Positions 1-46,915 of a stretch of DNA of 64,000 bases are shown here, in pieces; the stretch's first letter is position 1, and each line of letters starts with the position of its first letter. The notes beneath the pieces were generated by a model that saw only the letters and a program-made list of their open reading frames with translations, was not told where the DNA came from and did no database searches. Both the position numbers and the translations under genes were made by a program. Origin of the DNA: Ranitomeya imitator (lineage: Eukaryota); the NCBI RefSeq assembly GCF_032444005.1, contig NC_091288.1:168516001-168580000 (forward strand), given 5' to 3'.

Positions 1-1384
1 TGAATTGAAATGAAATGAATGAAATGGATGAAATGAATAGAAATGAAATGAATGAAATGAATGAACAAAATTAAAAATGAAAAAAAAATGAAAAAAATGA
101 AAAAAATGAAAAAAATGATGAATGAAAAAAATGAATGAAAAAAATGAAAAAAAGTAAATAAATGAAAAATGATGGAAAATAAAAATGAAATGAAATGAAA
201 ATAATAAAATGAAAAACTGATCGAAAGTAATGAGAAAAAGTGGAAAAATAAAAATTAAAAGTAAAAAATGGGTACGGGGAAGCACAGTCTTACCGTCTCC
301 ACTGTGCAGAAGGGTGAGGCTACTAGTGCAGTTGATTAAGTCTAGAGAAAAATAAAGTAGATCATGTTAGCCAGTCTATCTCGCGGTTCAAACCCCTGGG
401 GAGAAGGCTATCAAGGGTATAAATCCAGAACGTTTCTCGCTGTTTTAGCAACCGAATGTGGTTCCCTCCCCTTCTCGGGCGAGGGACTCTTTCTATAATC
501 TGAAATCTAAGTTGTGACACATTGTGTCTTGCCTCCTTAAAGTGCAATGGTAATGGTAGCCATGTTTTTTCGCATCTAATTGTGGATTTGTGGCTCGATA
601 TTCGATCTTTAATGGCCTGAGTCGTCTCTCCTACATATAATAACCCGCATGGGCACTTGATGATATAGACCACGTAGTTTGTGTCACAGGTGTAGTGCTC
701 CTTGATGGGATATGACTTCCCGGTCCGCGGGTGGACCACCTCATTGCCTTTAATGACGTTGGAGCAGCACCGGCAACTCAAACAGGGGAAAGTACCTGTT
801 CTACTTTGGCCCGTCAGAGTTCTATTTGAAGCTGTTTTGTGTGATCCTAGATCTGCCCTTACTATTTTATCACGTATATTCTTAGGTCGTCTGGTGCACA
901 TTAAAGGTGGATCTTTAAATATGGGGATGTTAGGATAGGCCTTGTTGAGGAGAGGCCAATGTGCTCGAATCAGGTTATGTATTTTATTCATTGTAGGGTG
1001 GTAGTTATGTACAAAGGGCAGACGTGGATTTTTTTGTTCTTGTACACCTGAGTCTAGATTATCAGAGTCTTGAAGTGCTCTAGAGGATTCCGTATTAAGG
1101 AGATCCGCCGGGTACTGGCGGGCTTTGAACTTGTTAGTCATTTCATGTAGCCTCAATTCTCTAGTGGAAGGATTGGACACGATTCTGGTTACCCTTTTAA
1201 ATTGTGATCTGGGGAGACTGTTTTTGATAGACCTGGGATGGCAGCTGTTATACAACAGAAGGCTGTTACAGTCAGTCGGTTTTGTAAAGATGTCAGTGCT
1301 TAAATTACCGATTGAATCTTTAATAATCTTAGTGTCTAGGAAGGTCACTTCGTCCTTGTGGTGGACCAATGTGAAGGACAGTTC
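1..1384 (-). mobile_element. Inverted partial copy of the Penelope-like element (RT C-terminus, GIY-YIG endonuclease and start of 3' UTR), running off the left window edge
   Basis: Reverse complement of ~3357-4738 with about 3 substitutions and ~2 nt of indel. ORF 362..1369(-) repeats the last 335 aa of ORF 1860..4379. Junction at 1384/1385. Confidence 0.95.
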
Positions 1385-1392
1385 AGTTATCT

Positions 1393-2106
1393 AGGATAAA
1401 AACCAAAACGGACTTCCTCCACCTACCCAGCAAGGACGTTAAATCAAGGGACTGGGAGAAAGAAAAGAAGAAACTCATTGGCTACGATTTGCACTGTGCA
1501 ACTTTAGGTGAATATCACCGTCAAGGGAAAATACCCAGAGGTCTACGTTGCAATCTTCGTCCAACCTTGTTTTCGGACAATGAAAAATACTGCACGACAT
1601 TCCAGAAGATTTTAAATAAATGTTCTTTTGACATCATATTGTTGACAATTGAGTACCTCCAGGAAGCTATTAAGAGCACAGAGGAGAAAATCGAGAGCAT
1701 CGAGACCCAACTGACCACTACCTTGAGTACTACTGAATTCGCCACACTGAAAAGTAAGGTGGACTCCATACTTACAACACACCAGAGAACTCTTGAAGAA
1801 AGGAAACGGACTAAATTCCAAAGAGATACTGAAGATTATCTCACCAACAACGTTTATAAATGGGAGGACCCATTTCCCAGACGACAGAGGCCAAGATATC
1901 GCCGTACACCAGGCGGGAACTACCACTCCGGGGGCTCTTCACCTGCAGGGGGATCCTCTGCAGGATCCGGCAGCGAAACTGGCGGGGCACAAACATCAGG
2001 TCTCTGTTTTTTAGGACAAAACGCACGCCAACCCGGAGGTCAAGGAAGAAGGGACGGGGACCGCCACATGACTCTCAGATCTCAGGTAGGAGTCCAAACT
2101 CGGTAG
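1393..2106 (+). CDS. PLE ORF1 (coiled-coil-like, then Arg-rich and Gly/Ser-rich tail), 5'-truncated at the inversion junction
   Basis: Frame is open from the junction (RIKTKTDFLHLPSK...LHCATLGEYHRQGKIPRGLR...) to TAG at 2104-2106. No native ATG; the ORF track starts at a TTG at 1489. Confidence 0.75.
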   Translation, partial: RIKTKTDFLHLPSKDVKSRDWEKEKKKLIGYDLHCATLGEYHRQGKIPRGLRCNLRPTLFSDNEKYCTTFQKILNKCSFDIILLTIEYLQEAIKSTEEKIESIETQLTTTLSTTEFATLKSKVDSILTTHQRTLEERKRTKFQRDTEDYLTNNVYKWEDPFPRRQRPRYRRTPGGNYHSGGSSPAGGSSAGSGSETGGAQTSGLCFLGQNARQPGGQGRRDGDRHMTLRSQVGVQTR

Positions 2107-4379
2107 TAAATATTTCTAACTATACTCTTTCTCCCTTAGAACTCAAAGTGCTTAACATGGGTCTATCCTTCTGCCCGACTCCTAGGTGGGATTCCTTTCA
2201 ACTTGAAAGGGACCTACAGCATTTGTATAGGAACATCAGACTGAAGGTACACTTTGAGGACTCTAGTAATTCCATCAGGCCTATTCCTATATTACACACT
2301 GAGGGACCCAGTATTACAATTGACCAACTTGGTCTTAGAAATCGAAGTACTTTTATTCCATCCAAATCAAACCATGCCGTAGAGACTTTTGTCAATCTTC
2401 TGGACAGAGACATTAAGAGAACTCTGCATGACCAACGATTAGGTTTCCTCCCTGTCCGCCACAATCTGAATCCGCTTGAAAAACAAGCTTTGAATTCACT
2501 ATGTGACAATAAAAACATCATTATTAAACCGGCGGACAAGGGGGGAGCCATCGTGGTTATGGATAAAAGCTTCTATGTTTCTGAAGTAAGGAGACAGCTC
2601 GCTGACACGACAACGTACAAAAAGATTCAAAATGATCCTACCCATGCCATACGTCAAAAGATTACCAGGATAGTTGACAAACACCTGCAACTTAAGACCA
2701 TCGATAATAAAACTAAAACATACCTCATTAACCACCATTCTGTGACCCCTGTCCTATACATATTGCCCAAAATCCACAAAAATCTCCAGAATCCCCCCGG
2801 TCGCCCTATTGTGGCATCGACTGTCTCCATTCTCAATCCACTATCCATATTCCTCGAAAAGCTCCTTACACCCTACACCAGAGTCACAAAGTCCTTTATA
2901 TTGGACACTGGGGATTTCCTAGGTAAAATCCGCAATATGAAAAGGATACCCAGCGACAGCCTCCTATGCACACTAGATGTAAATAGCCTATATACATCCA
3001 TTACCCACGATATGGGCATTGAAGCAGTGTCTCAAACCCTCAGTGAGGCCGAACTAGACAAAGGTACTCAAGAACTCTGCATTGATCTCCTCAATTTAGT
3101 GCTTAGGGAGAATTTTTTCATTTTTGAGGATGATTTTTTCCTGCAGACATGCGGCACGGCAATGGGGTCCAACGTGGCCCCAGGCTATGCAAACCTATAT
3201 ATGGATCGTTTTGAACGGGACTTCGTGTACACAAACCCCGGCTTTCAGCAGCATGCTCTCGCCTGGTATAGATACATAGACGATGTTTTTTGCGTATGGC
3301 GGGGAGACCAAACTAGCCTCCTAGAATTCTACGACACCATTAATACCGTCAGACCGGAACTGTCCTTCACATTGGTCCACCACAAGGACGAAGTGACCTT
3401 CCTAGACACTAAGTTTATTAAAGATTCAATCGGTAATTTAAGCACTGACATCTTTACAAAACCGACTGACTGTAACAGCCTTCTGTTGTATAACAGCTGC
3501 CATCCCAGGTCTATCAAAAACAGTCTCCCCAGATCACAATTTAAAAGGGTAACCAGAATCGTGTCCAATCCTTCCACTAGAGAATTGAGGCTACATGAAA
3601 TGACTAACAAGTTCAAAGCCCGCCAGTACCCGGCGGATCTCCTTAATACGGAATCCTCTAGAGCACTTCAAGACTCTGATAATCTAGACTCAGGTGTACA
3701 AGAACAAAAAAATCCACGTCTGCCCTTTGTACATAACTACCACCCTACAATGAATAAAATACATAACCTGATTCGAGCACATTGGCCTCTCCTCAACAAG
3801 GCCTATCCTAACATCCCCATATTTAAAGATCCACCTTTAATGTGCACCAGACGACCTAAGAATATACGTGATAAAATAGTAAGGGCAGATCTAGGATCAC
3901 ACAAAACAGCTTCAAATAGAACTCTGACGGGCCAAAGTAGAACAGGTACTTTCCCCTGTTTGAGTTGCCGGTGCTGCTCCAACGTCATTAAAGGCAATGA
4001 GGTGGTCCACCCGCGGACCGGGAAGTCATATCCCATCAAGGAGCACTACACCTGTGACACAAACTACGTGGTCTATATCATCAAGTGCCCATGCGGGTTA
4101 TTATATGTAGGAGAGACGACTCAGGCCATTAAAGATCGAATATCGAGCCACAAATCCACAATTAGATGCGAAAAAACATGGCTACCATTACCATTGCACT
4201 TTAAGGAGGCAAGACACAATGTGTCACAACTTAGATTTCAGATTATAGAAAGAGTCCCTCGCCCGAGAAGGGGAGGGAACCACATTCGGTTGCTAAAACA
4301 GCGAGAAACGTTCTGGATTTATACCCTTGATAGCCTTCACCCCAGGGGTTTGAACTGCGAGATAGACTGGCTAACATGA
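1860..4379 (+). CDS. PLE ORF2: reverse transcriptase + GIY-YIG endonuclease, uninterrupted
   Basis: Motifs KPADKGG, LYILPKIHK...PGRPIV, LDVNSLYT, GTAMGS, YIDD, FLD, and VYIIKCPCGLLYVGET...RE.FWI..L...P.GLN. No stops over 839 codons. Recognisable homology begins at VVNIS (~2103). Confidence 0.95.
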   Translation: MGGPISQTTEAKISPYTRRELPLRGLFTCRGILCRIRQRNWRGTNIRSLFFRTKRTPTRRSRKKGRGPPHDSQISGRSPNSVVNISNYTLSPLELKVLNMGLSFCPTPRWDSFQLERDLQHLYRNIRLKVHFEDSSNSIRPIPILHTEGPSITIDQLGLRNRSTFIPSKSNHAVETFVNLLDRDIKRTLHDQRLGFLPVRHNLNPLEKQALNSLCDNKNIIIKPADKGGAIVVMDKSFYVSEVRRQLADTTTYKKIQNDPTHAIRQKITRIVDKHLQLKTIDNKTKTYLINHHSVTPVLYILPKIHKNLQNPPGRPIVASTVSILNPLSIFLEKLLTPYTRVTKSFILDTGDFLGKIRNMKRIPSDSLLCTLDVNSLYTSITHDMGIEAVSQTLSEAELDKGTQELCIDLLNLVLRENFFIFEDDFFLQTCGTAMGSNVAPGYANLYMDRFERDFVYTNPGFQQHALAWYRYIDDVFCVWRGDQTSLLEFYDTINTVRPELSFTLVHHKDEVTFLDTKFIKDSIGNLSTDIFTKPTDCNSLLLYNSCHPRSIKNSLPRSQFKRVTRIVSNPSTRELRLHEMTNKFKARQYPADLLNTESSRALQDSDNLDSGVQEQKNPRLPFVHNYHPTMNKIHNLIRAHWPLLNKAYPNIPIFKDPPLMCTRRPKNIRDKIVRADLGSHKTASNRTLTGQSRTGTFPCLSCRCCSNVIKGNEVVHPRTGKSYPIKEHYTCDTNYVVYIIKCPCGLLYVGETTQAIKDRISSHKSTIRCEKTWLPLPLHFKEARHNVSQLRFQIIERVPRPRRGGNHIRLLKQRETFWIYTLDSLHPRGLNCEIDWLT

Positions 4380-4459
4380 TCTACTTTATTTTTCTCTAGA
4401 CTTAATCAACTGCACTAGTAGCCTCACCCTTCTGCACAGTGGAGACGGTAAGACTGTGC

Positions 4460-4800
4460 TTCCCCGTACCCATTTTTTACTTTTAATTTTTATTTTTCCA
4501 CTTTTTCTCATTACTTTCGATCAGTTTTTCATTTTATTATTTTCATTTCATTTCATTTTTATTTTCCATCATTTTTCATTTATTTACTTTTTTTCATTTT
4601 TTTCATTCATTTTTTTCATTCATCATTTTTTTCATTTTTTTCATTTTTTTCATTTTTTTCATTTTTAATTTTGTTCATTCATTTCATTCATTTCATTTCT
4701 ATTCATTTCATCCATTTCATTCATTTCATTTCAATTCATTTCATTCTTTTCTTTTCATTCTTTCCTTTTTCGTTTATTGGGTTCTTTTTATTTCATTTTA
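4460..4800 (+). repeat. (TTCAT/TTTTTCA)n low-complexity tract in the PLE 3' UTR, mirrored at 1-270
   Basis: Directly visible. Confidence 0.9.
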
Positions 4801-6614
4801 TTTAGTTTGGACTCCTACCATGCATCTGTATGTTTTACCATGTAACTGTCTTTGTCATGTATTGTACTGATCATTATGTACTGCCAGTCTGTATTCCTCA
4901 TAGCAGCGCTCCCTCCATCTACACATCACAGCCTCTCTCCACGCATTCCCTACACCCCTACGGCGTTTTCCAAAACAGTGCCTTCCTACATGCATGGCAC
5001 CACACTAGCGCCTGCAAGTCCTCTGCCCTTTTCACAAGGGCGCTCCATTTGTAACGCTGATTGCGCGCCCCCCCTCTCCTATAGCTCCCACTAGACAGGC
5101 TTTGGCATCCGTTCGGTCATCGGCAGACCTGGGCTTGCGTACACTGCGCAGGCCCAGGCTTTCTGTGGCAGACCGATGTGCTCCGCTGCTACTGCGCACG
5201 CGCGAGCGGCTGAAATCGCCATTGCGCATGCGCCGGCGTCCCTGCACTCGCTATGGACACATCACCACCCAGGGCCATAAATAGGTGCCTTCTGGGCACG
5301 TTCAGACAAGCGCTACTCCACGCAGTGACACTGTGAGTGTCTGCCCTTCCCACTTGCCCACCAACGCTGGTCCTGGCTACCTGTCTCCACGGACATCTGA
5401 GGACGGATGTGAGCAACTACCAACAGATAAGTTTTCTTTGTGCCGAGTGCCATACTCATGGTCCCCTTTTCTTTCTAGTGACATTGATCCCCTTATTCCG
5501 GCGGTTTAGTTTAGTATACATTGACCCTGGCTGGCTCCACAACCTAGCAGGTAGTGTTCTTTCCTCTCTACTGCATACACATTACCAGTAGCTTTGCAGG
5601 TACTTATTTTCTCTTGCCCCTCTCTAGCTACACGGACTTTCCCACAGTACTGGCTGTACTCTTCCAAGGTATCCAATTTTTGTTCTGGCGGGTCTCTTAA
5701 AGCGCACAGGTAGCTAGATATATTTCTTTCTATCATCATTATCATCTATTGGTTACCCGCACACTTAGATCTGTATGCATCTACATCTACCTTTACAGCT
5801 ATTGGTACACATACCTGTCTGCCCTGCACCACGGCGACCTCGGCACCATTACCACTAAGGTGATGTACATACAGAAGTGACTCCTTCTTTATGTTACATA
5901 GACGTTGCCAGTAGTTTTGCAGATATTTACTCGCTCTCCTTCTTTCCCCCCCTTTCCCCCTTCTCTTCAGCCATACGAATTTTCCCACATTACTGGTTAT
6001 ATTCTTCCAAGGTATTCAACTGTTGCTCTGGCTGGTCCCTTAAAGCACACAGGTAGTTATGTATCTTTACTTTTTATCATCCACCTACTTGTTACGTACA
6101 CACTGGATTATTTAGTGTATTTATATCTACCCATACAGCCATTGGTATACACCTGTCTGCCCTGCAACACGGCGACTACAGCATCATTAACACTAAGGTG
6201 ATGTGCATACATACATGGCGGCCATGCTAGGCCTATCTATAGTTGTACCTGAGGTCATACTAACACCAGTTATACAGCAGCCCAGCTCATTTTTCCTATT
6301 ACCCGTAACAGGTTATTTTCCTTTTTCTCTTGGCTGACACCCCAGCAGCAATATTTACGCATCGGTAGGAAGAATCTACTACCTAAGGGTATGCTGGACT
6401 ATTTTTCCCTACCGTCTCTTCTGTTACTAATTATCTATTGTGCATCTCTCTTGCTCCATTGTTTTTGTTCCTTGTTAATTATTGATGGTATGGGCCTATT
6501 TAGCCTCCTTTTCCTCGACACAAGTATTGACGTGTTTTCTGAACTGTATATATGTATATATGTAATTTTGTCCCTGTACATAGTTATTTACTACTGTTCT
6601 GTTCTATTTGTTTC

Positions 6615-14877: not shown

Positions 14878-17800
14878 TATTACCACATTGTTTTACCCTC
14901 ACTCTGTGTTGTATGAGTAGTATTCTGCCCGTGGGGAAGGAGTGCAGGCATTCAGTGGGATGAGCCCTTGTCCATGCACTCTCCCTAAACATATACAGGC
15001 CAGCAGATAAGAGCACACACTTACACTTGTATCTCAACACACGTTGATGGCAGCGGTGAAATGCTACTCAGTCATGCGGATCTGGGGGAGCTGCAGGTAG
15101 GTGTTTGTAGACTCCATTCAAGGGTTCCACAACCAGGGAGGCATATAGACAGACCCAGCAGACCATAGGTGAGACGCAACAAGAAATTGAGACTCCAGGA
15201 GCTTCGACTGCAATACAGGGCCACCTACAGTTGGTCAGCTTGATCCAGGAATTGGTCCTTTGGGAGGACGATGAGTTTGACCACGAGGAATTCAACTGCC
15301 TGCCAAGTCAAAGATCAAGTGGCAGTCTGGAATCAAGTACTCTGTCCCAAGAAGCCTGAGTCCAGGATTTGTTAGTCGCATTGGGAACCAGAGGTTCAAG
15401 CAGGAGAAGGAGCTGGAGTTGTACTATTTGTATGGGTGGAACCATACCACTGAGCAGAAGAATCATGGGGGAGGCAGGGCCACACTCTGTGCCTTCATCA
15501 GCTTCCAGGAACCAATGTATGCGGAAGACGACATATATGGACGCAATGGATACAAGTTTGTTTCTCGACAATTACCTGAGGAGTTACATAGGTCAAGCTG
15601 AGGACCAGGATAAGGATGATCAGAAGCCTATCACATCTGGTTAATTAAGATGAGGAAGAATGTGATGACACAGCATTTAATTTTAATTAGGCCAGACATA
15701 TTTTTCTTCGGTGGGTTAGGAGACATAGACTACTGTTCATATGAGCCTAAATATTGACTCTTAAATTGCTGTTTTTCCGTTCAGTTGGACAAAAGACATA
15801 AGCCATTATTCATATGAGTTTAAATGTTGACTCTTGAATTAATTTTTGTTTTCCCATTCTTGCAGGACAGGGATGCAGAGTCATTGAATAATCAATGTTT
15901 GCTAATATGTTGATTACCCATCGTATAGGTCCTTGTATCTTGTTGACCTGCAAACAGTAAAGGACATCCATATATATCCATCCAGAGGGATACAGATTTG
16001 AGAGATTCTACAGGATGCCAGTTGTTTAAGGGACCACAGCCCTAGTTGAAGGAAAACAGATCTGGATTCGGAGAAGCCTGATTGGGACCATCCAGTCACC
16101 TGGCCCCAAGGAGACATTCAGAGAAGCCAGGTTGGGATAATAAAGTCACCCGGCCACGTACCTTAGTGGACTTATTGTTACCTCCTCTATGTGGGTGCCC
16201 ACAAAAAGTGGGGAGCCACTGATGGGATAGTCAGGCTTCTAAGCCCGAAAGTCGCAGCTGCTCCAATCCCAGTGAGCCAACAGAAGGATAAGACACTGTA
16301 ATTTGCATAATCTTACAGTACAGACCAAAAGTTTGGACACACCTTCTCAATTGAAGATTTTTCTGTATTTTCATGACTATGAAATTTGTAAATTCACACT
16401 GAAGGCATCAAAACTATGAATTAACACATGTGGAATTATATACTTAACAAAAAAGTGTGAAGCAACTGAAAATATGTCTTATATTCTAGGTTCTTCAAAG
16501 TAGCCACCTTTTGCTTTGATGACTGCTTTGCACACTCTTGGCATTCTCTTGATGGGCTTCAAGAGGTAGTGACCAGAAATGGTCTTCCAACAATCTTGAA
16601 GGAGTTCCCAGAGATGCTTAGCACTTGTTGGCCCTTTTGCCTTCACTCTGCGGTCCAGCTCACCCCAAACCATCTCGATTGGGTTCAGGTCGAATGACTG
16701 TAGAGGCCAGGTCATCTGGCGTAGCACCCTATCACACTCCTTGGTCAAATAGCCCTTACACAGCCTAGAGCTGTGTTTGGGGTCATTGTCCTGTTGAAAT
16801 ATAAATGATGATCCAACTAAAAGCAAACCGGATGGAATAGCATGCCGCTGCAAGATGCTGTGGTAGCCATGCTGGTTCAGTATGCCTTCAATTTTGAATA
16901 AATCCCCAACAGTGTCAATAGCAAAGCACCCCCACACCATCACACCTCCTCCATGCTTAACGGTGGGAACCAGGCATGTAGAGCCCATCCGTTCACCTTT
17001 TCTGCGCCGCACAAAGACATGGTGGTTGAAACCAAAGATCTCAAATTTGGACTCATCAGACCAAAGCACAGCTTTCCACTGGTCTGATGTCTATTCCTTG
17101 TGTTCTTTAGCTCAAAAAAGTGTTTTCTGCTTGTTGCCTGTCCTTAGCAGTGGTTTCCTAGCAGCTATTTTACCATGAAGGCCTGCTGCACAAAGTCTCC
17201 TCTTAACAGTTGTTGTAGAGATGTGTCTGCTGCTATAACTCTGTGTGGCATTGACCTGGTCTCTAATCTGAGCTGCTGTTAACCTGCAATTTCTGAGGCT
17301 GGTGACTCAGATAAACTTATCCTCAGAAGCAGAGGTGACTCTCGGTCTTCCTTTCCTGGGGCGGTCCGCATGTGAGCCAGTTTCTTTGTAGCGCTTGATG
17401 GTTTTTGCAACTGCACTTGGGGAAACTTTCAAAGTTTTCACAATTTTTCAGACTGACTGACCTTCATTTCTTAAAATAATGATGGCCACTCCTTTTTCTT
17501 TACTTAGCTGCTTTTTTCTTGCAATAATACAGATTCTAACAGTCTATTCAGTAGGACTATCAGCTGTGTATCCACCAGACTTCTGCTCAACACAACTGAT
17601 GGTCCCAACCCCATTTATTAGGCAAGAAATCCCACTTATTAAACCTGACAGGGCACACCTGTGAAGTGAAAATTATTTCTGTTGACTACCTCTTGAAGCT
17701 CATCAAGAGAATGCCAAGAGTGTGCACAGCAGCCATTAAAGCAAAAGGTGGATTCTTTGAAGAACCTAGAATATAAGACATATTTTCAGTTGTTTCACAC

Positions 17801-24664: not shown

Positions 24665-26277
24665 CAGGTCCTTCTCAAAAAATTAGCATATAGTGTTAAA
24701 TTTCATTATTTACCATAATGTAATGATTACAATTAAACTTTCATATATTATAGATTCATTATCCACCAACTGAAATTTGTCAGGTCTTTTATTGTTTTAA
24801 TACTGATGATTTTGGCATACAACTCCTGATAACCCAAAAAACCTGTCTCAATAAATTAGCATATTTCACCCATCCAATCAAATAAAAGTGTTTTTTTAAT
24901 AACAAACAAAAAAACCAACAAATAATAATGTTCAGTTATGCACTCAATACTTGGTCGGGAATCCTTTGGCAGAAATGACTGCTTCAATGCGGCGTGGCAT
25001 GGAGGCAATCAGCCTGTGACACTGCTGAGATGTTATGGAGGCCCAGGATGCTTCAATAGCGGCCTTAAGCTCATCCAGAGTGTTGGGTCTTGCGTCTCTC
25101 AACTTTCTCTTCACAATATCCCACAGATTCTCTATGGGGTTCAGGTCAGGAGAGTTGGCAGGCCAATTGATCACAGTAATACCATGGTCAGTAAACCATT
25201 TACCAGTGGTTTTGGCACTGTGAGCAGGTGCCAGGTCGTGCTGAAAAATGAAATCTTCATCTCCATAAAGCATTTCAGCCGATGGAAGCATGAAGAGCTC
25301 CAAAATCTCCTGATAGCTAGCTGCATTGACCCTGCCCTTGATGAAACACAGTGGACCAACACCAGCAGCTGACATGGCACCCCACACCATCACTGACTGT
25401 GGGTACTTGACACTGGACTTCAGGCATTTTGGCATTTCCTTCTCCCCAGTCTTCCTCCAGACTCTGGCACCTTGATTTCCGAATGACATGCAAAATTTGC
25501 TTTCATTAGAAAAAAGTACTTGGGACCACTTAGCAACAGTCCAGTGCTGCTTCTCTGTAGCCCAGGTCAGGCGCCTCTGCCGCTGTTTATGGTTCAAAAG
25601 TGGCTTTACCTGGGGAATGCGGCACCTGTAGCCCATTTCCTGCACACGCCTGTGCACGGTGGCTCTGGATGTTTCCACACCAGACTCAGTCCACTGCTTC
25701 CTCAGGTTCCCCAAGGTCTGGAATCGGTCCTTCTCCACAATCTTCCTCAGGGTCCGGTCTCCTCTTCTCGTTGTACAGCGTTTTCTGCCACATTGTTTCC
25801 TTCCAACAGACTTACCATTGAGGTGCCTTGATACAGCACTCTGGGAACAGCCTATTTGTTGAGAAATTTCTTTCTGGGTCTTACCCTCTTGCTTGAGGGT
25901 GTCAATGATGGCCTTCTTGACATCTGTCAGGTCGCTAGTCTTACCCATGATGGGGGTTTTGAGTAATGAACCAGGCAGGGAGTTTATAAAAGCCTCAGGT
26001 ATCTTTTGCATGTGTTTAGAGTTAATTAGTTGATTCAGAAGATTAGGGTAATAGGTCGTTTAGAGAACCTTTTCTTGATATGCTAATTTATTGAGACAGG
26101 TTTTTTGGGTTATCAGGAGTTGTATGCTAAAATCATCAGTATTAAAACAATAAAAGACCTGACAAATTTCAGTTGGTGGATAATGAATCTATAATATATG
26201 AAAGTTTAATTGTAATCATCACATTATGGTAAATAATGAAATTTAACACTATATGCTAATTTTTTGAGAAGGACCTG
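24665..26277 (-). mobile_element. Full-length Tc1 element (~210-bp TIRs, TA TSD)
   Basis: CAGGTCCTTCTCAAAAAATTAGCATA at both ends; TA at 24663-64 and 26278-79. Confidence 0.97.
24944..25948 (-). CDS. Tc1 transposase, open 334-aa ORF; first catalytic Asp replaced by Asn
   Basis: MGKTSDLT...; HTH region, GRKRCTT, VLFSNESKF (usually FSDES), [17 protein letters not shown] with D34E spacing. Confidence 0.9.
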   Translation of the reverse strand: MGKTSDLTDVKKAIIDTLKQEGKTQKEISQQIGCSQSAVSRHLNGKSVGRKQCGRKRCTTRRGDRTLRKIVEKDRFQTLGNLRKQWTESGVETSRATVHRRVQEMGYRCRIPQVKPLLNHKQRQRRLTWATEKQHWTVAKWSQVLFSNESKFCMSFGNQGARVWRKTGEKEMPKCLKSSVKYPQSVMVWGAMSAAGVGPLCFIKGRVNAASYQEILELFMLPSAEMLYGDEDFIFQHDLAPAHSAKTTGKWFTDHGITVINWPANSPDLNPIENLWDIVKRKLRDARPNTLDELKAAIEASWASITSQQCHRLIASMPRRIEAVISAKGFPTKY

Positions 26278-26581
26278 TATATGGTTTGTGTGTTTGCTTT
26301 ATATTCAGTTGGGCAATTATAATGTTCAAAAAGAAGAAAGTTATATTTACAAAACTGTAAAGCGCTGCGGAATATGTTAGCACTATAGAAAAATATAGAT
26401 TATTATTATATTTCATGAAATTGGGAAAACTAATCACTCAGCAGCCTTCCATTACCGGTAACTAATCAACTTTTTCCATTATGACAGGAGGTACCGTTAA
26501 CTATTCTCCATGCCTTCTTACATTGGCACACATTAATCTTATAGGTTAACAAAAAACAGAATAAAAAATATGAAGTCTTAC

Positions 26582-27174
26582 TCATTAAGTGTGTGAGTTG
26601 GCATCTCATTCCGCTCATTTTGACCATAACAACTTGTCTTGGCTTCTGGAATTACTGAATATGTGTCCAACATGGCTGATGCAGCTGTTGTGATAATTCC
26701 GAGGCCATCTCTTACTCTGGCTTCCAAGGTGTAGTCCCAGTCGTCATAAGATACAGAAACTAATCCAGATGGAAATTCAAAAGGTATTATTTCTGTGTTA
26801 CCCGTCACCAGATTAGGAACAATCCAGATGTAACCATATCCCATAAGGCCTAAAGAGCGGGCTTCATCAAAAATTCTAATGGATTCATCCTTTGAACAAT
26901 AAAGGAGTATAACCGAAGAATGGATCCTCTTCAGCTGATTAAGAGTTTGTGCATCAGTATATGATGCGTCCAGAGTAATTACATTCTGCACATCCCAATC
27001 CACAAAACTATTTTCCACAGTGTTTTTTATGAAACTTATAAAGTCTCGATATCCTGGGAAAGTGCTTGTTATAAGAGAGAAAACATGCCAGTCATATTCC
27101 TCCATGATACTAAGCATGACAGTAGCTTGCTGTGTGATGGAAGCTCCAAACTGGAAGAAGGTTGACTTTGAGTC
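26582..27174 (-). CDS. grin2a: Internal coding exon of NMDA receptor subunit GluN2A (N-terminal domain)
   Basis: Translation [21 protein letters not shown]...[16 protein letters not shown]...SCYG matches GluN2A as I recall it; AG acceptor (27175-76) and GTAAGA donor (26581); 593 bp, equal to the recalled length of the orthologous human exon; GNTE and SYDD are 2A-type rather than 2B-type. Confidence 0.95.
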
Positions 27175-27496
27175 CTGCAAAAGAACAATATAGGAAATGA
27201 TCAGGATGGAAATTATTACTTGGCAAAATATTATGTCAATATAAGAATGGCATTCATAGTGATGAACATGCAGAATTCAAATTTTCCAAGAAGTTTTTCA
27301 CTTAGACTTAAATTTGCTTTCACCATTATTGGACATTTTATCCATTGAGTTTTAAAGACCAAAAAGGCCAAACTGTATGAGAATACACATCTCAACTTAA
27401 TTTAAATACTGCATAATTGTTGAAAAAGGTCTAAGTGGCTTTTTACATTGTGGAAAAAGAAAGTAGGAAGCAGATATGATAAAATAATAAAATATG

Positions 27497-29790: not shown

Positions 29791-31397
29791 CAGTGGGGCA
29801 AAAAAGTATTTAGTCAGTCAGCAATAGTGCAAGTTCCACCACTTAAAAAGATGAGAGGTGTCTGTAATTTACATCATAGGTAGACCTCAACTATGGGAAA
29901 CAAACTGAGAAAAAAAAATCCAGAAAATCACAATGTCTGTTTTTTTTAACATTTTATTTGCATATTATGGTGGAAAATAAGTATTTGGTCAGAAACAAAC
30001 AATCAAGATTTCTGGCTCTCACAGACCTGTAACTTCTTCTTTAAGAGTCTCCTCTTTCCTCCACTCATTACCTGTAGTAATGGCACCTGTTTAAACTTGT
30101 TATCAGTATAAAAAGACACCTGTGCACACCCTCAAACAGTCTGACTCCAAACTCCACTATGGTGAAGACCAAAGAGCTGTCAAAGGACACCAGAAACAAA
30201 ATTGTAGCCCTGCACCAGGCTGGGAAGACTGAATCTGCAATAGCCAACCAGCTTGGAGTGAAGAAATCAACAGTGGGAGCAATAATTAGAAAATGGAAGA
30301 CATACAAGACCACTGATAATCTCCCTCGATCTGGGGCTCCACGCAAAATCCCACCCCGTGGGGTCAGAATGATCACAAGAACGGTGAGCAAAAATCCCAG
30401 AACCACGCGGGGGGACCTAGTGAATGAACTGCAGAGAGCTGGGACCAATGTAACAAGGCCTACCATAAGTAACACACTATGCCACCATGGACTCAGATCC
30501 TGCAGTGCCAGACGTGTCCCACTGCTTAAGCCAGTACATGTCCGGGCCCGTCTGAAGTTTGCTAGAGAGCATTTGGATGATCCAGAGGAGTTTTGGGAGA
30601 ATGTCCTATGGTCTGATGAAACCAAACTGGAACTGTTTGGTAGAAACACAACTTGTCGTGTTTGGAGGAAAAAGAATACTGAGTTGCATCCATCAAACAC
30701 CATACCTACTGTAAAGCATGGTGGTGGAAACATCATGCTTTGGGGCTGTTTCTCTGCAAAGGGGCCAGGACGACCGATCTGGGTACATGAAAGAATGAAT
30801 GGGGCCATGTATCGTGAGATTTTGAGTGCAAACCTCCTTCCATCAGCAAGGGCATTGAAGATGAAATGTGGCTAGGTCTTTCAACATGACAATGATCCAA
30901 AGCACACCGCCAGGGCAACGAAGGAGTGGCTTCGTAAGAAGCATTTCAAGGTCCTGGAGTGGCCTAGCCAGTCTCCAGATCTCAACCCTATAGAAAACCT
31001 TTGGAGGGAGTTGAAAGTCCGTGTTGCCAAGCGAAAAGCCAAAAACATCACTGCTCTAGAGGAGATCTGCATGGAGGAATGGGCCAACATACCAACAACA
31101 GTGTGTGGCAACCTTGTGAAGACTTACAGAAAACGTTTGACCTCTGTCAGTGCCAACAAAGGATATATTACAAAGTATTGAGATGAAATTTTTTTTCTGA
31201 CCAAATACTTATTTTCCACCATAATGTGCAAATAAAATGTTAAAAAAACAGACAATGTGATTTTCTGGATTTTTTTTTCTCAGTTTGTCTCCCATAGTTG
31301 AGGTCTACCTATGATGTAAATTACAGATGCCTCTCATCTTTTTAAGTGGTGGAACTTGCACTATTGCTGACTGACTAAATACTTTTTTGCCCCACTG
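29791..31397 (+). mobile_element. Full-length Tc1 element (third family; TA TSD)
   Basis: TIR CAGTGGGGCAAAAAAGTATTTAGTCAGTC; TA at 29789-90 and 31398-99. Confidence 0.97.
30159..31181 (+). pseudogene. Tc1 transposase of 340 codons with a single premature stop (TAG at 30873-75, probably from TGG)
   Basis: MVKTKELS...WSDETK...[11 protein letters not shown]...[11 protein letters not shown]...KY*; frame continuous across the stop. Confidence 0.9.
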
Positions 31398-41161: not shown

Positions 41162-44100
41162 TGTTATGTTTGCTAATGACAGGTGTTATGAAGGCAATCC
41201 AGAAACACAGTGTGCTTAGCGATCAGAGCGCACACAGTGATCTGACAAATACCCAAAAATACAAGAACGAGCTCTGAGACGTGGAAACTCTGTAGATTGC
41301 ACACCTGATCCTATCCTAAACACAACTAAAAGCGGCTGTGGATTGCGCCTAACAACTACCTAGGCAACTCGGCACAGCCTAAGAAACTAGCTAGCCTGAA
41401 GATAGAAAAATAGGCCTGACTTGCCCCAGAGAAATTCCCCAAAGGAAAAGGCAGCCCCCCACATATAATGACTGTGAGTAAGATGAAAAGACAAAACGTA
41501 GGGATGAAATAGATTCAGCAAAGTGGGGCCCGATATTCTAGGACAGAGCGAGGACAGTAAAGCGAACTTTGCAGTCTACAAAAAACCCTAAAGCAAAACC
41601 ACGCAAAGGGGGCAAAAAAACCCACCGTGCCGAACTAACGGCACGGCGGTACACCCTTTGCGTCTCAGAGCTTCCAGCAAAACAAAAGACAAGCTGGACA
41701 GAAAAAAGCAACAAAAAAGCAAAAGGCACTTAGCTATACAGAGCAGCAGGTCACAGGAACAATCAGGAGAAGCTCAGATCCAACACTGAAACATTGACAA
41801 GGAGCAAGGATAGCAGCATCAGGCGGAGTTAAGTAATGAAGCAGTTAACGAGCTCACCAGAACACCTGAGGGAGGAAGCTCAGAAGCTGCAGTACCACTT
41901 GTGACCACAGGAGTGAATTCAGCCACAGAATTCACAACAGTACCCCCCCCTTGAGGAGGGGTCACCGAACCCTCACCAGAGCCCCCAGGCCGACCAGGAT
42001 GAGCCGCATGAAAGGCACGAACAAGATCGGAAGCATGAACATCAGAGGCAAAAACCCAGGAATTATCTTCCTGAGCATAACCCTTCCATTTAACCAAATA
42101 CTGGAGTTTCCGTCTAGAAACACGAGAATCCAAAATCTTCTCCACAATATACTCCAATTCCCCCTCCACCAAAACCGGGGCAGGAGGCTCAACAGATGGA
42201 ACCATAGGTGCCACGTATCTCCGCAACAATGACCTATGGAATACATTATGTATGGAAAAGGAGTCTGGGAGGGTCAAACGAAAAGACACAGGATTGAGAA
42301 CCTCAGAAATCCTATATGGACCAATAAAACGAGGTTTAAATTTAGGAGAGGAAACCTTCATAGGAATATGACGAGAAGATAACCAAACCAGATCCCCAAC
42401 ACGAAGTCGGGGACCCATACGGCGTCTGCGATTAGCGAAAAGTTGAGCTTTCTCTTGGGACAAGATCAAATTGTCCACTACCTGAGTCCAGATCTCCTGC
42501 AACCTATCCACCACAGAATCCACACCAGGACAGTCCGAAGACTCAACCTGTCCTGAAGAGAAACGAGGATGGAACCCAGAATTGCAAAAAAATGGAGAAA
42601 CCAAGGTAGCCGAGCTGGCCCGATTATTAAGGGCGAACTCAGCCAACGGCAAAAAGGACACCCAATCATCCTGGTCTGCAGAAACAAAACATCTCAGATA
42701 TGTTTCCAAGGTCTGATTGGTTCGTTCGGTCTGGCCATTAGTCTGAGGATGGAAAGCCGAGGAAAAGGATAGGTCAATGCCCATCCTACCACAAAAGGCT
42801 CGCCAAAACCTTGAAACAAACTGGGAACCTCTGTCAGAAACAATATTCTCAGGAATGCCATGCAACCGAACCACATGCTGAAAGAACAAAGGTACCAAAT
42901 CAGAGGAGGAAGGCAATTTAGCCAAGGGCACCAGATGGACCATTTTAGAAAAGCGATCACAGACCACCCAAATGACTGACATCTTTTGAGAAACGGGAAG
43001 GTCAGAAATGAAATCCATCGAAATATGTGTCCAAGGCCTCTTTGGGACCGGCAAGGGCAAAAGCAACCCACTGGCACGAGAACAGCAGGGCTTAGCCCTA
43101 GCACAAATCCCACAGGACTGCACAAAAGTACGTACATCCCGTGACAGAGATGGCCACCAGAAGGATCTAGCCACTAACTCTCTGGTACCAAAGATTCCAG
43201 GATGACCAGCCAACACCGAACAATGAAGTTCAGAGATAAGTTTATTAGTCCACCTATCAGGGACGAACAGTTTCTCTGCTGGACAACGATCAGGTTTATT
43301 CGCCTGAAATTTTTGCAGCACCCGCCGCAAATCAGGGGAGATGGCAGACACAATGACTCCTTCCTTGAGGATACCCGCTGGCTCAGATAAACCCGGAGAG
43401 TCGGGCACAAAACTCCTAGACAGAGCATCCGCCTTCACATTTTTAGAGCCCGGAAGGTACGAAATCACAAAGTCGAAGCGGGCAAAAAATAACGACCAAC
43501 GGGCCTGTCTAGGATTCAAGCGCTTGGCAGACTCGAGATAAGTCAAGTTCTTATGATCAGTCAATACCACCACGCGATGCTTAGCTCCTTCAAGCCAATG
43601 ACGCCACTCCTCGAATGCCCACTTCATGGCCAGCAACTCTCGATTGCCCACATCATAATTACGCTCAGCGGGCGAAAACTTCCTGGAAAAGAAAGCACAT
43701 GGTTTCATCACTGAGCAATCAGAACCTCTCTGTGACAAAACCGCCCCTGCTCCAATCTCAGAAGCATCAACCTCGACCTGGAACGGAAGAGAAACATCTG
43801 GCTGACACAACACAGGGGCAGAACAAAAACGACGCTTCAACTCCTGAAAAGCTTCCACAGCAGCAGAAGACCAATTAACCAAATCAGCACCCTTCTTGGT
43901 CAAATCGGTCAATGGTTTGGCAATGCTAGAAAAATTACAGATGAAGCGACGATAAAAATTAGCAAAGCCCAGGAACTTTTGCAGACTTTTCAGAGATGTC
44001 GGCTGAATCCAATCCTGGATGGCTTGGACCTTAACTGGATCCATCTCGATAGTAGAAGGGGTAAAGATGAACCCTAAAAATGAAACTTTCTGCACACCGA

Positions 44101-46915
44101 AGAGACACTTTGATCCCTTCACAAACAAAGAGTTAGCACGCAGGACCTGAAAAACCATTCTGACCTGCTTCACATGAGACTCCCAATCATCTGAGAAGAT
44201 CAAAATGTCATCCAAGTAAACAATCAGGAATTTATCCAGATACTCACGGAAGATGTCATGCATAAAAGACTGAAACACAGATGGAGCATTGGCAAGTCCG
44301 AACGGCATCACTAGATACTCAAAATGACCCTCGGGCGTATTGAATGCAGTTTTCCATTCATCCCCTTGCCTGATTCTCACCAGATTATACGCACCACGAA
44401 GATCTATCTTAGTGAACCAACTAGCCCCCTTAATCCGAGCAAACAAGTCAGATAACAATGGCAAGGGATACTGAAATTTAACAGTGATCTTATTAAGAAG
44501 GCGGTAATCAATACACGGTCTCAGCGAACCATCCTTCTTGGCTACAAAGAAGAACCCTGCTCCCAGTGGTGATGACGATGGGCGAATATGTCCCTTCTCC
44601 AGGGATTCCTTCACATAACTGCGCATAGCGGCGTGTTCGGGCACGAATAAATTAAATAATCGACCTTTAGGGAATTTACTACCAGGAATCAAATTGATAG
44701 CACAATCACAATCCCTATGCGGAGGTAGAGCATCGGACTTGGGCTCTTCAAATACATCCTGATAATCAGACAAGAACTCTGGGACCTCAGAAGGGGTGGA
44801 TGACGAAATCGACAAAAATGGAACATCACCATGTACCCCCTGACAACCCCAGCTGGATACCGACATGGAATTCCAATCCAATACTGGATTATGGGTTTGT
44901 AGCCATGGCAACCCCAACACGACCACATCATGCAGATTATGCAACACCAGAAAGCGAATAACTTCCTGATGTGCAGGAGCCATGCACATGGTCAGCTGGG
45001 CCCAGTATTGAGGTTTATTCTTGGCCAAAGGTGTAGCATCAATTCCTCTCAATGGAATAGGACACCGCAAAGGCTCCAAGAAAAACCCACAACGTTTAGC
45101 ATAATCCAAATCCATCAGATTCAGGGCAGCGCCCGAATCCACAAACGCCATGACAGAAAACGACGACAAAGAGCATATCAAGGTAATGGACAGAAGGAAT
45201 TTGGACTGTACAGTACCAATGACGGCAGACCTAGCGGACCGCTTAGTGCGCTTAGGACAATCAGAAATAGCATGAGTGGAATCACCACAGTAGAAACACA
45301 GACCATTCAGACGTCTGTATTCCTGCCTTTCAACTCTGGTCATAGTCCTATCGCACTGCATAGGCTTAGGTTTAACCTCAGGCAGTACCGCCAAATGGTG
45401 CACAGATTTACGCTCACGCAAGCGTCGACCGATCTGAATGGCCAAAGACAAAGACTCATTCAAACCAGCAGGCATAGGAAATCCCACCATGACATCCTTA
45501 AGAGCCTCAGAGAGACCCTTTCTGAACAAAGCTGCCAGCGCAGATTCATTCCACTGAGTGAGTACTGACCATTTCCTAAATTTCTGACAATATACTTCTA
45601 TCTCATCCTGACCCTGGCACAAAGCCAGCAAATTTTTCTCAGCCTGATCCACTGAATTAGGCTCATCGTACAGCAATCCGAGCGCCAGGAAAAACGCATC
45701 GACACTACTCAATGCAGGGTCTCCTGGCGCAAGAGAAAATGCCCAGTCTTGAGGGTCGCCGCGCAAAAAAGAAATAATAATCAAAACCTGTTGAATAGGA
45801 TTACCAGAAGAATGAGGTTTCAAGGCCAGAAATAGCTTACAATTATTTTTGAAACTTAGAAACTTAGTTCTATCTCCAAAAAACAAATCAGGAATAGGAA
45901 TTCTTGGTTCTAACATAGATTTCTGATCAATAGTATCTTGAATTTTTTGTACATTTATAACGAGATTATCCATTGAAGAGCACAGACCCTGAATATCCAT
46001 GTCCACACCTGTGTCCAGAATCACCCAAATGTCTAGGGGAAAAAAAAAAGTGAACACAGAGCAGAAAAAAAAAAAAAATGATGTCAGAACTTTTCCTTTC
46101 CCTCTATTGAGAATCATTAGTTGGCTCCTTGTACTGTTATGTTTGCTAATGACAGGTGTTATGAAGGCAATCCAGAAACACAGTGTGCTTAGCGATCAGA
46201 GCGCACACAGTGATCTGACAAATACCCAAAAATACAAGAACGAGCTCTGAGACGTGGAAACTCTGTAGACTGCACACCTGATCCTATCCTAAACACAACT
46301 AAAAGCGGCTGTGGATTGCGCCTAACAACTACCTAGGCAACTCGGCACAGCCTAAGAAACTAGCTAGCCTGAAGATAGAAAAATAGGCCTGACTTGCCCC
46401 AGAGAAATTCCCCAAAGGAAAAGGCAGCCCCCCCACATATAATGACTGTGAGTAAGATGAAAAGACAAAACGTAGGGATGAAATAGATTCAGCAAAGTGG
46501 GGCCCGATATTCTAGGACAGAGCGAGGACAGTAAAGCGAACTTTGCAGTCTACAAAAAACCCTAAAGCAAAACCACGCAAAGGGGGCAAAAAAAACCCCA
46601 CCGTGCCGAACTAACAGCACGGCGGTACACCCTTTGCGTCTCTGAGCTTCCAGCAAAACAAAAGACAAGCTGGACAGAAAAAAGCAACAAAAAAGCAAAA
46701 AGCACTTAGCTATACAGAGCAGCAGGTCACAGGAACAATCAGGAGAAGCTCAGATCCAACACTGAAACATTGACAAGGAGCAAGGATAGCAGCATCAGGC
46801 GGAGTTAAGTAATGAAGCAGTTAACGAGCTCACCAGAACACCTGAGGGAGGAAGCTCAGAAGCTGCAGTACCACTTGTGACCACAGGAGTGAATTCAGCC
46901 ACAGAATTCACAACA
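41162..46915 (-). mobile_element. Full-length Ty3/Gypsy chromovirus (Tf1/sushi-like) LTR retrotransposon
   Basis: LTRs 41162-41939 (778 bp) and 46135-46915 (781 bp), TGTT...AACA termini, 4 substitutions + 3 homopolymer indels; PPT AAGGGGGGGG at 41943-41952. Confidence 0.97.
41819..46000 (-). CDS. Single-ORF Gag-Pol polyprotein (gag, CCHC, protease, RT, RNase H, integrase, chromodomain)
   Basis: CFYCGDSTHAISDC; FVDSGA; YLDDIL; EVDASE; HHCC region (..H..VLAGHPG..CGIC); ISMDF / SDRG / TERTNQ; EYIVEKILDSR..QYLVKWKGY..NSW. Likely start is MDIQG at 46000; an in-frame ATG also lies at 46117. Confidence 0.95.
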   Translation of the reverse strand: MDIQGLCSSMDNLVINVQKIQDTIDQKSMLEPRIPIPDLFFGDRTKFLSFKNNCKLFLALKPHSSGNPIQQVLIIISFLRGDPQDWAFSLAPGDPALSSVDAFFLALGLLYDEPNSVDQAEKNLLALCQGQDEIEVYCQKFRKWSVLTQWNESALAALFRKGLSEALKDVMVGFPMPAGLNESLSLAIQIGRRLRERKSVHHLAVLPEVKPKPMQCDRTMTRVERQEYRRLNGLCFYCGDSTHAISDCPKRTKRSARSAVIGTVQSKFLLSITLICSLSSFSVMAFVDSGAALNLMDLDYAKRCGFFLEPLRCPIPLRGIDATPLAKNKPQYWAQLTMCMAPAHQEVIRFLVLHNLHDVVVLGLPWLQTHNPVLDWNSMSVSSWGCQGVHGDVPFLSISSSTPSEVPEFLSDYQDVFEEPKSDALPPHRDCDCAINLIPGSKFPKGRLFNLFVPEHAAMRSYVKESLEKGHIRPSSSPLGAGFFFVAKKDGSLRPCIDYRLLNKITVKFQYPLPLLSDLFARIKGASWFTKIDLRGAYNLVRIRQGDEWKTAFNTPEGHFEYLVMPFGLANAPSVFQSFMHDIFREYLDKFLIVYLDDILIFSDDWESHVKQVRMVFQVLRANSLFVKGSKCLFGVQKVSFLGFIFTPSTIEMDPVKVQAIQDWIQPTSLKSLQKFLGFANFYRRFICNFSSIAKPLTDLTKKGADLVNWSSAAVEAFQELKRRFCSAPVLCQPDVSLPFQVEVDASEIGAGAVLSQRGSDCSVMKPCAFFSRKFSPAERNYDVGNRELLAMKWAFEEWRHWLEGAKHRVVVLTDHKNLTYLESAKRLNPRQARWSLFFARFDFVISYLPGSKNVKADALSRSFVPDSPGLSEPAGILKEGVIVSAISPDLRRVLQKFQANKPDRCPAEKLFVPDRWTNKLISELHCSVLAGHPGIFGTRELVARSFWWPSLSRDVRTFVQSCGICARAKPCCSRASGLLLPLPVPKRPWTHISMDFISDLPVSQKMSVIWVVCDRFSKMVHLVPLAKLPSSSDLVPLFFQHVVRLHGIPENIVSDRGSQFVSRFWRAFCGRMGIDLSFSSAFHPQTNGQTERTNQTLETYLRCFVSADQDDWVSFLPLAEFALNNRASSATLVSPFFCNSGFHPRFSSGQVESSDCPGVDSVVDRLQEIWTQVVDNLILSQEKAQLFANRRRRMGPRLRVGDLVWLSSRHIPMKVSSPKFKPRFIGPYRISEVLNPVSFRLTLPDSFSIHNVFHRSLLRRYVAPMVPSVEPPAPVLVEGELEYIVEKILDSRVSRRKLQYLVKWKGYAQEDNSWVFASDVHASDLVRAFHAAHPGRPGGSGEGSVTPPQGGGTVVNSVAEFTPVVTSGTAASELPPSGVLVSSLTASLLNSA

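Follow-up and report, generated by a model that had tools for sequence, protein, structure and literature searches.

A conserved U_UUU_UUA site in amphibian Penelope-like retrotransposons probably joins ORF1 to the reverse transcriptase by -1 ribosomal frameshifting

Penelope-like elements (PLEs) are a class of retrotransposons that forms the sister group of telomerase reverse transcriptase (RT). They are usually summarized as elements with a single open reading frame (ORF), and the strategy by which they are expressed has hardly been studied. The question of how such an element makes its RT is raised by a 64,000-nucleotide (nt) stretch of the genome of the dendrobatid frog Ranitomeya imitator (NCBI RefSeq assembly GCF_032444005.1, contig NC_091288.1, forward-strand positions 168,516,001 to 168,580,000), which we refer to as the window and number from its first letter. 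Positions 1-4800 of the window are one PLE, in which the RT and its associated endonuclease (EN) are encoded by a downstream ORF2 that overlaps an upstream ORF1 in another frame. Here, we draw from this copy, from homologous DNAs and proteins, from RNA folding and structure prediction and from published accounts of related systems to ask how the two frames are connected. On comparative sequence evidence we argue that a -1 ribosomal frameshift on U_UUU_UUA links ORF1 with RT-EN in this family, a reading to which we assign a probability of about 0.78.

ORF1 of the window copy is 5'-truncated and spans positions 1387-2106 (+), with 239 codons followed by a TAG stop at 2104-2106. Towards its end, positions 2005-2016 read TGT TTT TTA GGA, translated as C-F-L-G, and the slippery heptamer T TTT TTA at 2007-2013 (+) therefore stands in the X_XXY_YYZ phase of the ORF1 codons TGT TTT TTA. 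The ORF2 frame (1860-4379, +), which runs for 839 amino acids (aa) from an ATG at 1860 to a stop at 4377-4379, corresponds to -1 and remains open through the site, with codons starting at 2004, 2007, 2010 and 2013. The ORF1 stop coincides with the beginning of RT homology, the motif VVNIS (2103-2117, +), which starts a conserved RT N-terminal block of the form xVINIS..LSP.E...L.KGLSFCP. A tandem -1 slip is predicted to give the product ...SGLCFL-RTKRTPTRRSRKKGRG...SPNS-VVNIS, in which the -1-frame linker RTKRTPTRRSRKKGRGPPHDSQISGRSPNS (2013-2102, +; 30 aa, 33% Lys+Arg) overlaps the ORF1 tail. The phase, the open -1 frame, the coincidence of stop and homology, and the slip product had all been described in a first-pass annotation of this DNA, and direct reading of the sequence bears them out. 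Taken alone, the heptamer of the window copy is not significant: among codon shuffles of the 82-codon overlap, 31% hold at least one in-phase XXXYYYZ and 5.7% hold a well-known efficient heptamer. Its weight comes from its conservation in relatives.

At the DNA level, we compared seven intact homologs (L001-L007; 31-47% ORF1 protein identity), which make eight sequences with the window. All seven carry an in-phase run at F-L or F-F codons, as T6A in five, T7 in one (L003) and T6G in one (L006), and in 7/7 (8/8 with the window) the RT ORF, recognized by xVINIS...KGLSFxP, lies in the -1 frame. Every intact DNA thus keeps both the heptamer and the -1 phase of ORF1 and ORF2, two features whose retention the first-pass annotation had proposed to check. 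Conservation extends to codon choice. The codon preceding Phe ends in T in 8/8 sequences against a background of 26% (P ~2e-5) while encoding C, P, I, P, P, S, P and R, and the Leu codon is TTA in 6/7 against a background of 20% (P ~3e-4). In the window the heptamer is followed by a GGA codon (2014-2016, +), and GG stands at this place in 7/8 DNAs.

The same pattern is found at the protein level among 115 stand-alone ORF1 relatives whose tails are 45 aa or longer. These tails hold F-L in 92 cases and F-F in 8 (100/115), where composition predicts 13%. Various residues stand ahead of F (among them S, P, R, D, H, A and V), but K, E, Q, M and W, the only ones without an NNU codon, never do (0/100 against 18 expected; P ~2e-9); the residue after F-L or F-F has a G-starting codon in 85 of the 100 relatives. 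In the ORF1 alignment (A1), the tail is low-complexity sequence that cannot be aligned except at F208, which never varies, at L209, which at least 90% of sequences share, and in a TRSQ block just before the stop. The closest Ranitomeya copies (73-88% identity, compared as proteins) likewise have a stand-alone ORF1 that reads xFLG...MTLRSQ and then stops. Unlike a protein motif, the site bears the signature of constraint at the nucleotide level beyond what the amino acids need. The heptamer phase, a dependent downstream ORF in the -1 frame and conservation beyond amino acids, which are features by which a -1 frameshift site is recognized, are all present. The central proposal of the first-pass annotation, that a two-ORF PLE would join ORF1 to RT-EN by a -1 slip, is supported by all seven DNAs and by 100 of the 115 proteins.

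In the mechanism that we propose, a ribosome translating the family ORF1 would encounter NNU UUU UUA followed by G in the tail, ~30-45 codons 5' of the stop. Most ribosomes would complete ORF1, while a minority would slip back one base on U_UUU_UUA by tandem re-pairing in the P and A sites, as on the gag-pol RNA of HIV-1 (human immunodeficiency virus type 1). The slipped ribosomes would read a basic linker of 30-50 aa and then RT-EN, and the outcome would be an ORF1-RT-EN fusion made in a low, fixed proportion to ORF1. The inherent slipperiness of U6A, together with slow decoding of UUA, may be what the site depends on. We infer the ribosomal slippage itself, its rate and its independence of a classical downstream structure from this comparative pattern. 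The wider claim, that a whole widespread amphibian PLE lineage expresses its RT only as a fusion via a structure-free, HIV-like U_UUU_UUA-G site, is more tentative, and we would put it a little under an even chance.

Several observations weigh against frameshifting at this site. The homologs are related to one another and are partly Logan contigs, so the P values above overstate independence. ORF1 and ORF2 overlap, and dual coding could explain some of the conservation. The Z base of L006 is G, which is usually a poor shift base in eukaryotes. No stimulatory hairpin or pseudoknot was found 5-9 nt downstream of the heptamer. The first-pass annotation had cautioned that it saw no convincing downstream hairpin, and this caution holds: the 97 nt 3' of the site in the window fold at -22.2 kcal/mol with z = +0.38 against shuffles, folding 60, 90 and 130 nt 3' of the heptamer one sequence at a time yields z values that are mostly above zero across the eight sequences, and RNAalifold predicts 0 pairs on the eight. 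An H-type pseudoknot was absent from 8/8 sequences by a crude home-made search. All these tests leave room for long-range or unusual stimulators. G-rich downstream runs could form weak two-tetrad quadruplexes; we do not count them as evidence because they are explained by RGG-rich coding. That leaves two options: slippage at a low rate that needs no structure, or slippage helped by something to which these methods are blind. A last point against the reading is that the window copy, without an ORF1 ATG, carries the signal but probably cannot use it normally.

The missing ORF1 start, which the first-pass annotation had overlooked, is a consequence of where the sense copy begins. The ORF1 frame (codon register 1375/1489) is open from 1375 and contains no ATG, and the sense copy starts at ~1385-1387, inside ORF1 codon ~16 and immediately after an inverted arm of the same element. 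Full-length relatives start MSTETYVYDDATGSTILSKIKTK and the window ORF1 starts LSRIKTK, a comparison that leaves the window ORF1 without ~16 N-terminal codons and the ATG. Given this 5' truncation, the heptamer is inherited from a parent element and may not operate in the window copy.

Individual homologs add detail to this picture. In L005, another efficient heptamer (A AAA AAC, at its positions 885-891) also stands in phase, 69 nt 3' of T6A and within the ORF1/ORF2 overlap. P0119 (L009), the one checked relative without F-L, was considered as an exception to the pattern and rejected as such, being a decayed copy that has CCC TTT TTA after a premature stop and no RT downstream.

If ORF2 were instead translated independently, from the ATG at 1860, by leaky scanning or by reinitiation, F-L would be a motif of the ORF1 protein and the heptamer would be incidental. 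The window copy does offer this in-frame ATG and an ORF that is complete at 839 aa, the search for a stimulatory structure at the site was negative, and a killifish Neptune element has two non-overlapping ORFs (PMC12602865). The ATG, to which the first-pass annotation had drawn attention, is indeed present, but it is not a conserved start: at 1860-1862 (+) it is a by-product of the ORF1 codons TAT AAA TGG (Y-K-W), and a TAA precedes it in the -1 frame. The same codons create an identical stop-Met pair in L002 and L007, where 5-6 stops then intervene before the heptamer. In four of the seven relatives (L002, L004, L006 and L007) the -1 frame opens just 3-27 nt 5' of the heptamer and its first ATG lies 279-435 nt 3' of it, past the xVINIS...KGLSFCP block, so that there is no RT-frame ATG before the conserved N-terminal block. 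The stretch that would be read after a slip and before xVINIS is similar in all eight sequences (30-51 aa, 24-33% Lys+Arg; 36-51 aa and 24-32% in the seven homologs alone). Independent translation of ORF2 would also leave two things unaccounted for, namely that the choice among synonymous codons (NNT, TTA) is more constrained than the amino acids require and that the site sits in a disordered, otherwise unconserved tail. These comparisons argue against a conserved start codon belonging to ORF2, and we regard its independent translation as improbable.

Slippage might also occur at another step, if transcription or reverse transcription on the T6/T7 run added a U and so put RT in frame with ORF1. 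The homopolymer of 6-7 T is present in all eight sequences, -1 and +1 indels by HIV RT at the same U6A motif are reported in PMC5737442, and three relatives (P0032, P0005 and P0158) are in-frame or mis-framed near the site, as polymerase slippage would lead one to expect. Such slippage needs the run alone, whereas what is conserved here includes its phase and its 3' base: in 8/8 sequences its first base occupies codon position 3, its last base is A in 6/8 with G next, and the F-L protein signature has the same phase in 92/115 relatives. Slipped transcripts of a retroelement would, moreover, be copied into progeny as fused copies and would set no stable ratio of products. We therefore give polymerase slippage only a slim chance.

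A third alternative is that the real element has one continuous ORF and that the heptamer is due to chance or to a defect of this copy, such as loss of a T from T7. The 31% frequency of in-phase heptamers in overlap shuffles is in its favor, as is the existence of relatives with a continuous ORF1-RT ORF. The clearest of these is P0046 from Bufo gargarizans, an in-frame ORF1-RT-EN fusion of 1065 aa encoded by a single 3198-nt exon, which aligns with ORF1 over residues 78-238 (46%) and with ORF2 over residues 306-1060 (49%); P0060, P0062 and P0076 are additional in-frame ORF1-RT forms. Against a copy defect, the two-ORF form and the site are found in the closest members (73-88%) and in the 100 stand-alone ORF1 relatives with F-L or F-F, all seven intact DNAs are of the two-ORF form, the one with T7 included, and the ORF1 tail past the site is itself conserved (TRSQ, then stop). 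The first-pass annotation had named a continuous-ORF family, with a homopolymer deletion in this copy, as the finding that would speak against frameshifting; the closest Ranitomeya copies keep a stand-alone ORF1, and we consider this explanation very unlikely. Least probable is a short intron joining ORF1 to ORF2 from the CAG-GT donor-like sequence at the TRSQ-V codons, which we reject as the joining mechanism since, although CAGGT occurs at the ORF1 end in 5/8 sequences, public gene models splice ORF1 into RT (P0001, P0003, P0008, P0009, P0122, P0127 and P0135) and conserved introns are known in PLEs from the legend to Fig. 1 of PMC8557442, the ~20-40 nt gap from TRSQ to VINIS could not hold a vertebrate intron, the junctions vary from one gene model to another and delete conserved RT N-terminal motifs, and the residue after Q varies (V, R, T, K, S), leaving GT not conserved.

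The natural fused forms also count in favor of the preferred reading, frameshifting at U_UUU_UUA. In addition to P0046 and the other in-frame forms, P0032 has xFL, then a basic linker resembling that of the -1 frame, and then NIS. On this sequence evidence, related PLE lineages alternate between frameshifted and in-frame fused forms.

The frog gene models listed above splice ORF1 into mid-RT at varying points or duplicate ORF1-RT blocks. Their jumps from TRSQ into RT would arise because the gene predictor works around the frame change, and these chimeric models look like annotation artefacts of the frameshift. Hundreds of anuran entries named 'uncharacterized protein LOC...' are PLE ORF1.

To gauge the extent of the ORF1 family, we ran its translation by HMMER against the full set of 1.84 billion cluster representatives; 826 clusters matched at an E-value (E) <= 0.001, 61 of them at E <= 1e-30. 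The matches are mostly stand-alone proteins of ~240-270 aa, in which the alignment starts near residue 17-25. The nearest relatives come from Ranitomeya imitator itself (up to 88% identity), and all named relatives are anuran, including R. variabilis, Anomaloglossus, Dendrobates, Bufo, Hyla, Dendropsophus, Engystomops and Xenopus laevis; a metagenome scan with the ORF1 alignment returned no relatives. An AlphaFold (AF2) model built from a 32-sequence alignment places helices at residues 16-46, 66-112 and 115-152 with a predicted local distance difference test (pLDDT) score >90, followed from ~155 by a disordered tail rich in S, G and R. The family ORF1, at ~250 aa, is thus predicted to consist of a three-helix core and a disordered Ser/Gly/Arg-rich tail. 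A Foldseek comparison of the model with the PDB gave no match at E <= 0.001 (best E 1.3), and a Pfam search gave no family, with only sub-threshold coiled-coil-like noise. The end of ORF1 (window 2072-2090; also L001-L003 and L007) keeps T-R-S-Q as ACN CGN TCN CAG, and in the same block the overlapping RT frame keeps [IVF]-[SP]-G, a short dual-coding segment that resembles a CAG-GT splice donor.

The PLE copy in the window is young, its arms being 99.6% identical. Positions 1-1384 (-) hold an inverted copy of the 3' part, which is the reverse complement of 3357-4738 (99.64% over 1384 nt by self-BLAST). This arm is cut by the window start, contains a minus-strand ORF of 335 aa that duplicates the ORF2 C-terminus, and abuts the 5'-truncated sense copy, giving the pseudo-LTR (long terminal repeat) or inverted/tandem partial-copy arrangement by which PLEs are recognized. 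An inverted 5' arm is a typical insertion form of PLEs. Besides this arm, self-BLAST detected no further copies of the element in the window.

ORF2 encodes a PLE RT, a Zn-finger-like linker and a GIY-YIG EN. Pfam assigns RVT_1 to aa 358-513 (E 9e-8) and GIY-YIG to aa 736-773 (E 3e-4). The RT core lies at 2931-3398 (+), with YIDD at 3273-3284, and the EN core (VVYIIK...LYVGET), delimited by Pfam and motif reading, at 4065-4178 (+); an RT followed by a C-terminal GIY-YIG EN within a single ORF is the domain order of a PLE. The Zn-finger-like motif CLSCRCC (CX2CxxC; 3957-3977, +; ORF2 aa 700-706) stands 5' of the EN and is a hallmark of Neptune/Nematis elements by the definition in PMC8557442. 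By linker motif and domain order, we assign the element to the Neptune-type PLEs. The 3' untranslated tail (4380-4800, +) consists of T-rich short repeats (TTTCA/TTTTTCA-like) and has its mirror image at 1-360 in the inverted arm. An Rfam search showed no hammerhead ribozyme, either at the gathering score across all of the window or at E <= 1 across 1-6500, and its CUGANGA core was not found in the 3' tail. The lack of a detectable hammerhead ribozyme is unusual for canonical PLEs.

Just 3' of the PLE lie a CpG-rich stretch at 5040-5300 and two similar direct-repeat units of ~400 nt at 5460-6230 (5560-5880 and 5890-6230). Further along the window, a Ty3/gypsy chromovirus-type LTR retrotransposon at 41819-46117 (-) has an uninterrupted ORF of 1432 aa with gag and pol in one frame (Retrotrans_gag, RVT_1, RNase H, integrase, SH3_Tf2-1 and chromodomain), in contrast to the frameshifted PLE. 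Tc1/mariner-type transposase ORFs at 24944-26011 (-), 30159-30875 (+) and 16479-17069 (-) carry HTH_Tnp_Tc3_2, Sleeping Beauty helix-turn-helix (HTH) and DDE_3 domains, and one of them, of 355 aa, looks near complete. The only host-gene-like feature that we saw in the window is a 200-aa ORF at 26578-27180 (-) that matches ANF_receptor (E 2e-13) and may be a class-C G-protein-coupled receptor or receptor exon.

If -1 frameshifting at U_UUU_UUA is true, the site would be the first characterized recoding signal in the PLE class and a natural structure-free U6A frameshift site that related lineages have repeatedly swapped for an in-frame fusion, displaying evolutionary switching between frameshifted and fused forms inside one family. 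A conserved frameshift would give PLE ORF1 a role comparable to that of Gag or L1 ORF1p, with a measurable, fixed ORF1:RT ratio, and would explain hundreds of ~250-aa 'uncharacterized' frog proteins as well as the chimeric spliced ORF1-RT models. A U6A site apparently without a stimulator would also be useful for separating the contributions of the heptamer, the following G and UUA decoding.

What is already known is -1 frameshifting of the gag-pol type, which has been hinted at for PLEs. The first-pass annotation had known of no report of programmed frameshifting in PLEs, which is true in part: in the legend to their Fig. 1, Craig et al. (2021; PMC8557442) write of PLEs that 'ORF1 can be separated by a frameshift' (marked there by a hash sign) 'with a pseudoknot', and searches of the available literature turned up nothing more. 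As in the PLEs of that legend, a helix-rich upstream ORF1 of coiled-coil character is followed by a frameshift before the RT ORF; unlike in the legend, which names no slippery sequence, a pseudoknot was not found here. The searchable literature, with two older primary PLE papers outside its scope, describes neither the conserved U6A site nor its phase nor the amphibian ORF1 family. What is new is a defined, conserved, HIV-like U6A-G site in a large amphibian ORF1 family, with no detectable stimulator and with switching between frameshifted and fused forms.

Among elements of the same type, the Neptune element repeat.CL27 of the Fundulus killifish has ORFs at 73-492 and 666-2669, the first of unknown function (PMC12602865, published in 2025). 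It shares with the frog element the Neptune-type organization, with ORF1 upstream of an RT/GIY-YIG ORF2; its ORFs do not overlap as the frog ORFs do, and PMC12602865 discusses no frameshift. The closest parallel at the site itself is HIV-1 gag-pol, where U UUU UUA is followed by a conserved GGG (PMC4373837), decoding of UUA by a rare tRNA modulates slippage, and slow decoding opens a second slippage route (PMC6547452). The PLE heptamer is identical, stands in the same phase and precedes a codon that starts with G, mostly GGN; the PLE products are predicted to read F-L-R or F-F-R; and in both systems an upstream structural-type ORF in frame 0, with the site near its end, precedes an RT ORF in frame -1. 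Unlike HIV-1, with its stem-loop, the PLE shows no stem-loop or pseudoknot 3' of the site in the eight sequences, its RT is accompanied by a GIY-YIG EN without protease, RNase H or integrase, and its ORF1 is not a retroviral Gag (no Pfam match, no PDB fold match). In the broader comparison with gag-pol of LTR retrotransposons and retroviruses, the proposed PLE strategy would share an abundant upstream protein, a rarer enzyme fusion and a fixed recoding rate, and it differs in belonging to another class of retroelements, one in which related lineages move from frameshifted to fused in-frame forms or back.

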